Below are positions 6,981 to 59,552 of a DNA stretch of 64,000 nt, piece by piece. Made by a program: the position numbers and the translations under genes. The stretch spans positions 149,455-213,454 of the forward strand of contig RHPI01000401.1 in NCBI GenBank assembly GCA_009103225.1, given 5' to 3'. The notes below the pieces were generated by a model, which did no database searches, was not told the origin of the DNA, and saw nothing but the letters and a program-made list of their open reading frames with translations. Numbering within the stretch: the stretch's first letter is position 1; each line of letters begins with the position of its first letter. The stretch comes from Chlorokybus atmophyticus (lineage: Eukaryota > Plantae > Mesostigma and Chlorokybus algae).

Positions 6981-7119
6981 NNNNNNNNNNNNNNNNNNNN
7001 NNNNNNNNNNNNNNNNNNNNNNNNNNNNNNNNNNNNNNNNNNNNNNNNNNNNNNNNNNNNNNNNNNNNNNNNNNNNNNNNNNNNNNNNNNNNNNNNNNNN
7101 NNNNNNNNNNNNNNNNNNN
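6981..7119. other. Assembly gap (139 N)
   Basis: N run following a (GA)n microsatellite. Confidence 1.
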
Positions 7120-26300: not shown

Positions 26301-26360
26301 TGGATGCACAGATGGCTACGATAATTTCATCAGGCCCCAGCGGTGAGGATTGGAGGGTGG

Positions 26361-26381
26361 GTCCCAAGTCGGGGTATATAG
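26361..26381 (+). promoter_or_regulatory. snRNA promoter: USE-like GTCCCAAGTCG plus TATA box at about -29 (repeated at 32532-32552)
   Basis: TATATA lies 29 nt upstream of the predicted U1 start; GTCCCAAGTCG resembles the plant USE RTCCCACATCG. Confidence 0.55.
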
Positions 26382-26403
26382 ATTGGTTACCTACATGCGT
26401 AAG

Positions 26404-26563
26404 GCACTTACCTGGCTGGCGTCTATCCGCGAACACGAAGGCGGATGGCGTGGGCTGCGTGGCTTCCATTGCACTTCGGTTGCTGCAACGCCTAACAACA
26501 CTCTACGGAGTGTCTGTACAGCAAAATTTGTGCCAGAGGGGGCTTGCGCTTGCGCGGCCCCCA
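26404..26563 (+). ncRNA. U1: U1 spliceosomal snRNA, copy 1
   Basis: ACTTACCTGG 5' end, stem-loop I with GAACACGAAG loop, U1A loop ATTGCAC, stem-loop III ACACTC-TACG-GAGTGT, helix H GCTG/CAGC, Sm site AAATTTGTG and terminal GGGGGC..GCCCCC hairpin; 160 nt. Confidence 0.95.
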
Positions 26564-26639
26564 CCTCCACCCTCACCTCCACCCTCACCGATCCCCACAA
26601 CCTCATACACACGCACATGCCCACCTATCCGCACGCATG

Positions 26640-26903
26640 CACGCACCCACTCACTCGCTCTTCGTCGCAATGCCTTTCAGCCTCCCACTTACCGTGTCCA
26701 AAATCTCGTAAAGCACTTTCGCACACGCTGGATAGTAGGCTAGATGGTGATAGTGTGCTAGTGCAAAATGTCACGCACCCACTCACTCGCTCTTCGTCGC
26801 AATGCCTTTCAGCCTCCCACTTACCGTGTCCAAAATCTCGTAAAGCACTTTCGCACACGCTGGATAGTAGGCTAGATGGTGATAGTGTGCTAGTGCAAAA
26901 TGT
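26640..26903. repeat. 132-bp exact tandem duplication downstream of U1 copy 1
   Basis: CACGCACCCACTCACTCG starts at 26640 and 26772. Confidence 0.93.
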
Positions 26904-31459: not shown

Positions 31460-32084
31460 CGCCGCCGAAGTCGCCGCCAAGGCTGAAGGGACGAATGAGC
31501 ACAAAATGTGCCCGCAGCGCTACGGTGCAACTCTCTCTCTCTCTCTCTCTCGCTCTCTCTCTCTCTCTGTGTGTGTGCGTGTGTGCAATGACTGCATGTT
31601 GGATTTAAACCATGCACAATAGCACAGTATCAAGTTACAATAAAAATACAATAAGCATATACGAAAATAAGTGTTGTACAATGCAATGTGCCTCCGTAAT
31701 TGCAATGTGTGCGTTGGCCCCAATAGCTTGCGTTTGCGTTTGAGCGTGCATTGCACTTCTGCGTCCGTACTACTGAAAAGCTTGCGTAAGTTACAATAGT
31801 TTGAGTCGCAATTTAACTCTCCCATGATAAAATTGATAGTCTTAATTTGTATTCTTTTAAAGTGACAGAGGAAAAAACGGCATACGCGAGGTGCACACTC
31901 GTATATCACATGTGTAGAATGCACACTCGCATATTTGTAATATAAATGTTCATTGCATCTTTCACACCCATGTAAAAATGGTTTGCACACATTACATAAT
32001 GTTACAGATATAATAAATTCATTTTGCTTGCGATATATGCACATATCACGTTTCATGAGCAATTGAGAAAATAAAAGAAAGCCT

Positions 32085-32365
32085 TGTTGAAGCGGCCATC
32101 GTATGCTGCATGCATTATGCACTATAGTTAATGTGTAAGACTCTTTTATAGATGATGCAAACAAACACTCGTAGGGAGAAACTGTATTGCACAACCGCAA
32201 TGGTCATCCGAGATCTGAAAAAATATAATGAAACTTTATTGAAGCGATCATAGTATGCTGCATGCATGTTACGCACTATAATTACTGTGTAAAACTCTTT
32301 TATACATGATGCAATCAAACACTCATAGGGAGAAACTGTATTGCACATCCGCAATGGTCATCCGA
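32085..32365. repeat. Diverged tandem duplication, period ~154 bp
   Basis: TAGGGAGAAACTGTATTGCACA..GCAATGGTCATCCGA ends at ~32211 and ~32365. Confidence 0.8.
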
Positions 32366-32480
32366 CAATCGGAGTGATGAGCTTCATACTCAGATTGAAC
32401 ATGCTCGCTCCTTTCCCGCACAAGCCGTACTTCAAACCAGCGTGATGAGAAATAAGCGTCAACATGAAGTATTGTGCGTA

Positions 32481-32799
32481 CCGTATTTGCCCGGATCACC
32501 CCTCCCTCCAGCGGTGAGGATTGGAGGGTGGGTCCCAAGTCGGGGTATATAGATTGGTTACCTACATGCGTAAGGCACTTACCTGGCTGGCGTCTATCCG
32601 CGAACACGAAGGCGGATGGCGTGGGCTGCGTGGCTTCCATTGCACTTCGGTTGCTGCAACGCCTAACAACACTCTACGGAGTGTCTGTACAGCAAAATTT
32701 GTGCCAGAGGGGGCTTGCGCTTGCGCGGCCCCCACCTCCACCCTCACCNAATCAATGGGGTGCTGGACTCGGGCGGGGGGTGTATTCGGGCAAATACGG
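32481..32799. mobile_element. Tc2/pogo-like non-autonomous TIR element (MITE) containing a U1 gene; one N at 32749
   Basis: TA|CCGTATTTGCCCG...CGGGCAAATACGG|TA: a 13-bp perfect TIR extending imperfectly to ~30 bp, with a TA target duplication. Confidence 0.75.
32575..32734 (+). ncRNA. U1: U1 spliceosomal snRNA, copy 2 (identical to copy 1)
   Basis: Block 32508-32748 matches 26337-26577, including the promoter. Confidence 0.92.
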
Positions 32800-32968
32800 T
32801 AACATAACTCATGCCACATAAGGCATTCATGTGTGTCGTAACATGCCGGAAGCTCAGAGCGTCGTGCTGTTCATGGGAGCACCAAGTGAAGGGAAAGGCA
32901 TGAGAGGTGCCTCATGTCATAAGGACGTCTCGCAAAACATTACTCTGGTATAGAAGCAGTGCCCTATC

Positions 32969-33067: not shown

Positions 33068-33140
33068 CGACTCCACTGGGGATCGAACCCAGAATCTCCA
33101 GCTCCGTAGGCTGGCGCCTTATCCATTGGGCCATGGAGTC
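33068..33140 (-). tRNA. tRNA-Arg(ACG)
   Basis: 73-nt cloverleaf GACTCCA..TGGAGTCG, anticodon stem CCAGC/GCTGG, loop CT-ACG-GA, T-loop GGTTCGATCC. Confidence 0.97.
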
Positions 33141-33520
33141 CTGTTACATCAAGGTTGAGAATTGTAAATTACAATTCGTCTAAGCAGTTTTGGAAGTTCC
33201 GCTCATTTGAATCTAGCTTCTTCCGGAGCGCGCGGGAAGCTTGGAGCTAACGTTCGTCGGGGATAACAACGAGCTCATTGGCCCGCAGGCCCGCCGCCAC
33301 CATGGCAGCATGCGGACGGACTGCCGGTCAAGACCGGAGGGCAGGATGCTTACTAGCTTCTTATCCAGAATTTCCCTTACCAGAACTGTAGGTTTGGCTT
33401 CTTTCCTTGCTCTGTAACTTTGGGCGTGATTCTTTGCTTCGTATTGGCTTTTTGCACTCGTTCAGCAAGGATGCCGCTTCCACTCTGACTACCGGTCTCG
33501 CTCCGTGTCACTTCGCGACA

Positions 33521-35264
<1,744 letters not shown>

Positions 35265-55922: not shown

Positions 55923-58900
55923 ATGGGTGTGCCGAGCTTTTTCCGATGGCTGAGCACGAGGTACCCTCGGACTATCGTGGACGTGGTGGAGGCGGAACCT
56001 CACATGGTGGAGGGTGTCGCTGTTGCGCCGGTAGACGGAACTCTGCCCAACCCCAACGGCCTGGAGTACCACGCCCTGTACCTTGACATGAACGGCATCA
56101 TCCACCCTTGCTTCCACCCTGAAGACCGTCCCGCCCCCACCACCCTGCTGGAGGTGTTCAGCAACGTGTTCGACTACATCGACCGCCTCTTCCTCATCGT
56201 CCGCCCCCGCCGCGTCCTCTTCATGGCCATGGACGGTGTTGCTCCCAGGGCCAAGATGAACCAGCAGCGTGCGAGGCGATTCAGGGCGGCGCAGGATGCA
56301 GCGGAGGCGGCCGCGGAGGAGGCGCGTCTGCGGGCGGAGTTTGAGGCTGCTGGGCATGGCCCTCCGCCCCCAAAGAAACCCTCAGAGGCGTTTGATAGTA
56401 ATGTCATCACGCCGGGTACGCCCTTCATGAGCCAGCTAAGCGTGGCGCTGCAGTATTACGTGCACCTGAGGTTGAACCGCGACCCCGCATGGAGAGGGAT
56501 TAAGGTTCTACTCTCAGACAGCTCTGTGCCTGGCGAGGGCGAGCACAAGATTGTCCAGTATGTTCGCCAGCAGCGCAACCGCCCCGGACATGATCCCAAC
56601 ACGCGGCACTGTCTCTACGGACTCGACGCCGACCTTATCATGCTCTCGCTTGCCACGCACGAGGCCCACTTCTCTATCCTGCGCGAGCTGGTTGTGTTCA
56701 AGGGTGGACCTGGCGGTAACAACAATGCACAACGCTGTTTCCTATGCAACCAGGAGGGACACATCGCTGCTGAGTGCACCGGTGCGGCCGCCGCGCAGGA
56801 TGGGGAGGATGGGGATGGCAAACCTGTCATTGCAAAGAAGCCCTTCCAGTTCCTGCATATATGGGTGCTGCGCGAGTATCTAGAGAAGGACATCAACGTC
56901 CCCGACAAGGATGCCCTTGGGTTCCCGTATGACCTCGAGCGCATCATTGACGACTTCGTGTTTATGTGCTTCTTTGTTGGCAATGACTTTCTGCCTCACA
57001 TGCCCACGCTAGAGATCAGAGAGGTATGGAGCTTGGCTTGAGCATTTTCTTGCATGCTGGCAGTAAAGTGAGTAGCTGGCATCACTTTTCTGGCATACGT
57101 TGTACACGTGTGTTGGTAATGAACACAGTGTCACATGCATGATTATGCGTGCATGAGGCAATACTTTGAAAAACTTTGATGTTGGCTTACACCTGATGTT
57201 GATGGCCAAGGCGTGTGTGTTTGCAGAATGCCATCGATTTGCTGATGGCCATCTACCGGGGTTCGCTGAAAGAGATGGGCGGGTACTTGTGCAACAACGG
57301 TGACGTGCACCTGGACCGGGTGGAGTACTTCATGCGCAAGGTGGGCGTGCATGAGGAGGCCATCTTCCAGAAGCGCGCCGCCCAGCACGAGCGTTCGGCC
57401 AACCGCGCTCGCAACCAGAAGGCGCAGCGGCAGCAGCGTGGGTCCGATGCTGCCCCCACACGCATGGTGACCGTCGCACCAGTTGCACGCTACGATGGCT
57501 CACGCCTAGCCTCTGCCAGCAACGGGTCCACGTACAACAGCAATAACAACAGCAGCGGAAGTGGCAGCAACAAAGCTGCAGCTGAAGCGCTTAAGGCGTC
57601 GCTTTTGTCAAGAACGGGTGGTGGCGACAATGCTGCCCCGCAGGGCCACATAAAAAGATTGAGGTTGGATGAGAAGGGCGAGGCTCTTGACACCGGCGCT
57701 GCTGCTGAGGTACTGCTTGAATTGCTTGTCTCACGCGTTGCATGCTTGCCAGTTCTAATGTGTCATGTTGCCTTTGTATGTGTTGTTGTTTGCCTGCTGC
57801 TGAGACTTGATGTCTGCTGACAGTGGTGGGACATGTTGAAGGAGTCCAAGGACGAGAGGAACCGCAAGAAGAATTCTCAGGCGGCCGCGGAGTTCTCCCT
57901 CAAGCTCAAGAGCGCGCTCAATGACAAGGCAGACCTGCTGGACAAGGGCTACGAGGACGACGTGCGGCTCGGCCAATCCGGCTGGAAGGAGCGCTACTAC
58001 AAGGCCAAGTTCGGCTTTGCATTGGACGAGCAGGAGAAGGTGCAGGACGTCGTGAAGAAGTACATTGAGGGGCTGTGTTGGGTGCTCAAGTATTACTACC
58101 AGGGCTGCGTGTCGTGGGGTTGGTACTACCCTTATTACTACGCGCCGTTCGCCTCTGATCTTGTGGGCCTTGCCGACTTGGATATCAGCTTCACGCTGGG
58201 CGAGCCGTTCAAGCCGTTTGAGCAGCTTCTATCAGTGTTGCCCGCAGCGAGCGCGCATGCGCTTCCCCCGGCATACAGGCGACTGATGACAGATAGGGAC
58301 TCCTCCATCTTAGACTTCTATCCTCTTGACTTTGAGGTGGACATGAAGGGCAAGCGCTTTGCGTGGCAGGGTGTTGCGAAGCTCCCTTTTATTGACGAGC
58401 AGCGCTTGCGCATGGCCATTGAGCCCCTCGAGCACACTCTCACCCCGGACGAGCGGCGGCGCAACCGCCACATGTCGGACTTGCTGTATCTCCACAGCAG
58501 CGACAAGCTGGCACCCTACGTGTACTCGCTGTACGATACGTTTGAGCACCTGGAGGATGGGCCTGAGCGCCGGGCCGCCTGCATTGAGCTCGACCCTGAA
58601 GCCAGCCAGAGCCTCCTTGGGGCTATCTATCTCTGCGAGGGCGGGTCCTCGGCGAGCGTGCTGCGCTCCCCGCTGGCGGGCTTCGAGGACATCACCGCCA
58701 ACCGCGTGCTGGTGGCCGTGTACAGAAACCCGTCAACCCAGCCGCACGTGGCACGCCTGCAGCCAGGGGCGATTCTACCTGAGAGGATATTGACCGATCT
58801 TGACACGCCCGAGCTTCCTGTATTATGGCATGAGGACAGGTTTGGCAACAATCGGTCTCCAAGCCCATATGGCAGAGGAGGAGGAGGTCCTGGCTCTCGC

Positions 58901-59552
58901 TCGCCCTCACCCACACCCTACAACCCTGCTGTCACGCTGGCCAATGGCGCCCACCGCATGCTGCAGCACAACCTCGGCGCGCTGCCGCAGCGGCCCGGCA
59001 TGGCAACGGCACAGTTTGCGCAGGGACCCTCGGCGGGGCAGCCGGGCTTTAGTGGCGGGCGAGGGCGCGGGGGCGTGCTGCCTGCACCGCTTCACGGTCA
59101 GTACGGCCAACCTATGCAGCCTCCTCCATATGGGTATGGAATGCCTGGAGCATCACAGCCACCACTTTATGACCAGTATCATGACAGATCAATGCAACGT
59201 CCACAACAAGACCGCTATGCCTGGCAGGGCGCAGGTGTGTTAAGTTGATGTCATGCATTGCCTAACGTGTGCCTCTGGCTGTGTGTGGTTGTGTACACGC
59301 TTACTAACTCATTGCCATTGTTCAACAGGGTCGCCGCTTCCGTATGGGCCTGTGCCACCATCAATACCCAACGCAGGATACCCCCTGTTGCAACCACAGC
59401 AGCAACATCCGCACCAACAGTTCCAGCATCAACAACAAAGACCCGGGTTTGCACGACCTCCTCCGCACGCAGGCATCGGTAGCAACAACTACTACAACGC
59501 ACTGTCACGACCACCGCAGCAGGGACCGCACTACCCCCAGGGACGTAGGTAG
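55923..59552 (+). CDS. XRN3: 5'-3' exoribonuclease, XRN2/XRN3 type with zinc knuckle
   Basis: Exons 55923-57023, 57227-57709, 57824-59234, 59329-59552. [73 protein letters not shown]. Confidence 0.96.

Follow-up and report, generated by a model that had tools for sequence, protein, structure and literature searches.

A U1 snRNA gene apparently captured as DNA between the terminal inverted repeats of a TA-flanked transposon remnant in Chlorokybus

snRNA genes are dispersed and multicopy, and new snRNA loci have mostly been put down to segmental duplication or retroposition. Among DNA transposons, derivatives of Ds, P and Mu show internal deletions together with filler DNA, which arise through abortive gap repair. 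Several described systems come close to what we report here. Pack-type capture is known for the Mariner/Stowaway-type elements of rice (Gisby and Catoni 2022, PMC8903248). The Dada DNA transposons target the U1 and U6 snRNA genes; they insert within U1 at a fixed site, generate duplications of 6-7 bp, and are without terminal inverted repeats (TIRs) (Kojima and Jurka 2013, PMC3706591). Finally, the SINEU are SINEs that derive from snRNAs (Kojima 2015, PMC4494074). Here we examine a locus within a 64-kb stretch of the genome of the alga Chlorokybus (hereafter the window) at which a U1 snRNA gene lies between short inverted repeats that are themselves flanked by TA. The reading that we favour, and that we hold to be probable with real room for doubt, is that this is a genuine TA-flanked transposon remnant carrying a captured DNA copy of a U1 locus. 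The features on which this reading is built are listed in Table 1.

Table 1. Positions of the putative element, of its parts and of the second U1 block within the window
Feature	Position	Strand	Basis or remark
Left TA, putative target-site duplication	32479..32480	.	read directly
Left arm	32481..32507	+	perfect TIR 32481-32493; weaker match to right arm until ~32505
Putatively captured block	32508..32748	+	67-68 bp 5' of U1, the U1 gene and 13 bp 3'
Promoter-like motifs	32532..32551	+	resemblance to USE consensus and TATA
U1 snRNA gene in element	32575..32735	+	Rfam RF00003, 117.8 bits, alignment
Single N	32749..32749	.	exactly at right junction of captured block; assembly gap
Right arm	32750..32799	-	perfect TIR 32787-32799
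Right TA, putative target-site duplication	32800..32801	.	read directly; pairs with left TA
Second U1 block, apparent donor	26337..26577 (U1 26404-26564)	+	identity; without inverted ends

Rfam finds two full-length U1 snRNA genes in the window, one inside the element and one in the second block, and each of them spans model positions 1-166 of RF00003 with 117.8 bits (gathering score 69.5). The alignment to this family shows ACUUACCUG, which recognizes the 5' splice site, at the 5' end of U1. The Sm site AAUUUGUG, the motifs of loops I and II and the terminal stem-loop can also be made out, and stem-loops I-IV are present with every helix. The gene within the element is intact and uninterrupted. 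A preliminary description of this DNA, made from the letters alone, had reported that the two genes sit in identical blocks, and we could confirm this base for base: the blocks, which lie ~6.2 kb apart, are 100% identical over 241 bp. That description also spoke of a complete gene, a term that applies to the element's copy with some doubt, as its 3' flank amounts to just 13 bp and may or may not contain the signal for 3'-end formation.

The two blocks have a feature at their edges that deserves a separate mention. An imperfect inverted repeat of 20 nt, 70% complementary, joins the two edges of each block (26342-26361 with 26558-26577, and 32513-32532 with 32729-32748); it is G-rich on the 5' side (GGTGAGG...GGGTGGG) and C-rich on the 3' side (CCCCCACC...CCTCACC), and its end coincides with the right end of the block. 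This repeat could be a chance product of low complexity, or it could bear on where copying stopped. A unit of 132 bp follows the 26-kb U1 copy at a distance of some 60 bp and is present as a perfect tandem duplication (26640-26903).

The element itself is intergenic. A tRNA-Arg(ACG) gene follows 270 bp downstream (33068-33140, minus strand), and beyond it lies a multi-exon gene for porphobilinogen deaminase (HemC; 33400-35264, plus strand), whose first exon starts near 33520. Protein matches to the last HemC exon all have at most 77% identity, and the top-scoring ones, at 67-69%, come from plants and streptophyte algae. Directly upstream of the element, two tandem units of ~152 bp that are 81-92% identical occupy 32064-32368. 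We considered these units as a paralogous empty site and rejected them, as their alignment score was no better than that of shuffles; no other paralogous empty site was found within the window. Elsewhere, Pfam matches indicate that transposons are abundant in the first 22 kb of the window, and at 55923-59248 (plus strand) there are two long ORFs with XRN_N and XRN_M, domains of the XRN 5'-3' exoribonucleases, which are probably exons of one XRN gene.

The DNA upstream of U1 is part of the duplicated block and contains two motifs of interest. TATATA (32546-51) lies ~30 nt before the U1 5' end, and GTCCCAAGTCG (32532-42) agrees at 9/11 positions with RTCCCACATCG, the consensus of the seed-plant snRNA upstream element, or USE (bioRxiv 10.64898/2026.10.23.761446), an agreement that has to be read as a resemblance. 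In Arabidopsis, the spacing between USE and TATA selects the polymerase (bioRxiv 10.64898/2026.10.23.761446); here the USE-like motif and the TATA are much closer together than they are in land plants. We regard the pair as putative promoter motifs, and the earlier proposal that a promoter was captured along with the gene stands at this level of resemblance.

The upstream DNA also speaks to how the U1 sequence was copied. SINEU and retroposed U1 pseudogenes are comparable to the present locus in that U1 sequence has been spread by the machinery of a mobile element. They are, however, RNA-mediated and start at the 5' end of the RNA, whereas the copy in the element includes upstream DNA and is bounded by TIRs. 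Because 67-68 bp upstream of U1 were copied too, the cargo was copied as DNA and not retroposed, and we rejected a retroposed U1 pseudogene or a SINEU as the identity of this locus. Dada is the other obvious comparison, as it likewise physically ties a DNA transposon to a U1 gene. The topology is the opposite one: in Dada the transposon lies inside U1, while here an uninterrupted U1 lies inside TA-flanked TIRs. With U1 uninterrupted and with TA and TIRs as its flanks, the locus departs from the published characters of Dada (PMC3706591), and we rejected this identity as well.

We then considered the inverted ends. The left end reads TA-CCGTATTTGCCCG (32479-32493) and the right end CGGGCAAATACGG-TA (32787-32801), which together make a perfect inverted repeat of 13 nt with TA on both sides; the arrangement is as previously described, and it is unique in the window. 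A repeat-finder gives longer arms of 27 nt with 81% complementarity, and a gapped alignment against composition-matched shuffles puts the inner-arm similarity past the 13-mer at p ~0.06. Because the longer similarity is thus marginal, we take the perfect 13-nt TIR with a TA on each side to be the secure feature. No further copy of the TIR occurs in the window at up to 4 mismatches in 15, and no termini lie inside the element, between the TIRs.

How much can be made of a 13-nt repeat? The locus could be an ordinary dispersed U1 paralogue, with gene conversion accounting for the identity and with an inverted repeat around it by chance, in which case there would be no transposon. snRNA genes are, after all, multicopy and often homogenised, and chance alone should produce ~0.5-2 perfect inverted 13-mer pairs, no more than 1 kb apart, in 64 kb. 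The window in fact contains 36 such pairs at most 1 kb apart, and just one of these 36 has TA on both outer sides. First-order Markov simulations (30 in total) yielded no TA-flanked perfect 13-mer pair at all. Moreover, this one pair fits tightly around the U1 block, with arms of 27 nt on the left and 50 nt on the right, so that the TIR goes together with the block, unlike a chance pair elsewhere in the window. When these observations are combined with the presence of the same terminus at the ends of TA-flanked elements in other contigs, which we turn to now, a chance repeat around an ordinary paralogue becomes extremely unlikely.

We scanned metagenomes, viral contigs and prokaryote genomes for the 18-mer that consists of the TA and the terminus. 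This 18-mer matched at 67 metagenome loci and at 17 in prokaryote genomes, none of them algal; the viral contigs gave no match, and a 24-nt pattern of the terminus found none in the metagenomes. Nearly all matches of the 18-mer are solitary and lie within bacterial sequence, at a number close to chance expectation, and the contigs labelled 'human gut' hold one recurring single-match sequence without an inverted partner; no contig that we retrieved had the look of human DNA. The motif sits at the tips of inverted-repeat elements in just two settings. In the first (L010:476-932), it is the left end of an element of 457 bp, the right end of which is the same 16 nt inverted. The second is a group of termite-gut metagenome contigs, represented among others by L005:703-2172 and L060:1203-2658, in which the motif ends a TA-flanked element of 1.47 kb; the partner end of this element, which the search pattern did not include, matches the motif with 2 mismatches in its first 13 nt. 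Related single ends with differing flanks are found at L046:981, L061:4463 and L067:3706. What the algal element has in common with L010, L005, L060, L046, L061 and L067 is the terminal 16-18 nt. None of the related metagenome elements contains U1, and we found no notable ORF, and thus no transposase, in L005, L046 or L067. A separate detail of L010 is that CGAATATAAGCCG is repeated subterminally in both of its arms.

The recurrence of this terminus at the tips of TA-flanked elements in unrelated eukaryote-type contigs supports the view that it is a genuine transposon end of the Tc1/mariner-pogo type, with a conserved terminal motif. We found no paper that gives any part of it as a string in the context of a transposon. 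The anatomy of the locus points the same way: TA is duplicated at the two outer ends, as in Tc1/mariner-pogo elements, and the TIRs that also mark these elements are present (perfect for 13 nt and weaker to ~25 nt). Its sequence thus supports classification as a putative non-autonomous element of the Tc1/mariner-pogo type in the broad sense. Neither the window nor the retrieved metagenome loci contain a matching autonomous element with a DDE/D transposase. The narrower label of Tc2/pogo, which the preliminary description had derived from a terminus starting with CCGTA, found no support. It would call for a pogo-type transposase (DDE_1 with a CENP-B-like DNA-binding domain) or for termini that match a pogo or Tc2 element; we found no literature source for such a start of Tc2/pogo ends, and a phylogeny paper on pogo gives no such terminus. 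The term MITE, used in the same place, implies many homogeneous copies, and the 64-kb window has one.

A caution about the right side of the element is needed at this point. Two runs of N occur in the window, one of 139 N at 6981-7119 and the other the single N of Table 1, and we confirmed that the latter marks the right junction, where identity to the 26-kb U1 copy stops exactly. SOAPdenovo at k=85, followed by GapCloser and Pilon, produced the published Chlorokybus assembly (PMC7027972). If the window is from this assembly, the lone N marks a gap left open after gap filling, and a two-copy repeat of 241 bp, being longer than k, would break contigs. Two consequences follow from an N at the right junction: 241 bp is the minimum size of the cargo, and the continuity from TIR through U1 to TIR rests on scaffolding. 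The assembly method further suggests that the 100% identity could be slightly inflated, if both copies were filled from one pool of reads.

These considerations raise the alternative that the structure is an artefact of assembly, in which the U1 block does not in fact adjoin the right arm or in which the gap hides much more sequence. Two points speak for it. The N stands at the very point at which the identity to the other U1 copy stops, and the published assembly was made with a short-read de Bruijn assembler and GapCloser (PMC7027972). A repeat of 241 bp exceeds the k of 85 and would break contigs. The left junction, on the other hand, is continuous sequence that has just 2-5 nt in common with the donor-like locus, too little for a false join by the assembler to be likely there. 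On the right, a wrong join would have had to place a perfect, correctly oriented and TA-flanked partner terminus within 307 bp, and this is very unlikely to happen. We therefore judge an artefact to be unlikely, and continue with the reading that the TIRs and the U1 block belong to one element.

Where did the cargo come from? The most likely source, to judge from the sequence, is the identical copy 6.2 kb upstream. Its flanks look like the parental context, since the C-rich 3' flank there runs smoothly past the end of the block and continues into a second TCCACCCTCACC unit, while in the element the sequence changes abruptly at that point. In agreement with the earlier statement that the apparent donor is without TIRs, a search around the 26-kb copy at up to 4 mismatches found no match to the TIR. 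It is nevertheless an apparent donor, since fixing the donor needs the other U1 loci of the genome. The direction of copying might also have been different: U1 could be the native cargo of the transposon family, or the copy in the element could be the older one, with the 26-kb copy derived from it. The blocks are identical, so that the direction cannot be read from them. Yet the 26-kb copy has no traces of the arms, its 3' flank goes on into the second TCCACCCTCACC unit as a parental context would, and the related elements of other organisms are without U1. On balance, we find native cargo or an older element copy quite unlikely, and an origin of the cargo at the 26-kb locus remains our preferred view.

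The route by which a copy of this locus could have entered the element can be narrowed down further. Gisby and Catoni have proposed, for Pack-TYPE elements including Pack-Mariner, that two neighbouring insertions are mobilised jointly together with the DNA between them (PMC8903248), and two insertions flanking U1 might have done the same here without any template switching during repair. Such an event sits poorly with arms of just 27 and 50 nt, with an element that has no internal termini and with a 26-kb copy that has no TIR remnants nearby, and we consider it very unlikely. With retroposition and Dada excluded and joint mobilisation argued against in this way, what remains is the replacement of the element's interior by ectopic sequence during the repair of a break.

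We propose the following course of events. A small non-autonomous cut-and-paste element of the Tc1/mariner-pogo type, with its TA duplication and TIRs, would have suffered a double-strand break, either after excision, with repair from the sister copy, or through an internal break. Repair synthesis may then have moved to the nearby U1 locus as its template, with the ends rejoined at short stretches of homology. What would be left of the original element is a left arm of 27 nt and a right arm of 50 nt, with an interior of at least 241 bp of U1-locus DNA. The outcome would be an intact U1 gene with TATA and USE-like motifs between apparently intact transposon ends. From its sequence, the element's U1 could be transcribed, and the element could be movable if a matching transposase exists.

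The left junction offers some indication of such a short homology. Identity to the other U1 copy begins there at CCAGC, and the right arm has TCCAGC at a comparable depth, which weakly suggests that, before capture, as many as 5 nt may have been common to the left arm and the sequence upstream of U1. The CCAG microhomology that had been noted at this junction finds weak support in this correspondence between the arms, and it depends on the same marginal arm resemblance (p ~0.06). As a separate observation, the join itself (32500-32532) creates an 11-nt hairpin from the element arm CCCTCCCTCCA and the U1 upstream sequence TGGAGGGTGGG, 91% complementary and with a loop of 11 nt.

How does this element compare with those described in the literature? 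Like the Pack-Mariner elements of rice (PMC8903248), it is non-autonomous, has TIRs and a TA duplication, and is low in copy number, and, as in Pack-TYPE elements generally, its TIRs and target-site duplication enclose host DNA for which a parental locus (26337-26577) can be named. Pack-TYPE cargo, however, consists of fragments of protein-coding genes (PMC8903248), whereas this element carries an entire non-coding RNA gene together with the DNA upstream of it. The definition also asks for mobilisation after capture, and at this locus we see one copy, no sign of movement after capture, and a host that is not rice but an early-branching streptophyte alga. In its working the element resembles a Pack-type element, and it falls outside a definition based on coding DNA. 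The suggestion of Pack-type capture by repair agrees with the anatomy and with a cargo that was copied at the DNA level along with its upstream region, the 26-kb copy being the apparent donor. The filler-bearing derivatives of Ds, P and Mu provide a second parallel, since they too keep both termini around an ectopic interior with very short homologies at the junctions. They differ from the present case, in which neither an empty form of the element nor an autonomous partner was found in the window and the right junction falls on an N. Overall, the architecture and the likely mechanism are known from Pack-type and filler-bearing elements, and what is unusual is the cargo, a Pol II snRNA gene together with upstream DNA; in the open-access literature, we found no description of an snRNA gene inside an element with TIRs.

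A single copy that spans an assembly gap is a lead, and falls short of a demonstrated mobile gene. It is also quite unlikely, in our estimation, that the element belongs to an active family in which a complete and working U1 is spreading functional copies through the Chlorokybus genome. If that were nonetheless the case, the family would provide a DNA-transposon route for the dispersal of snRNA multigene families, and each of its members would be a small, naturally formed cassette for Pol II snRNA expression, enclosed by transposon ends. If the capture itself is as we propose, DNA-level capture by a cut-and-paste element would constitute a third route by which new snRNA loci arise, and the range of Pack-type capture would come to include both a complete non-coding RNA gene as cargo and a deep-branching streptophyte alga as host.
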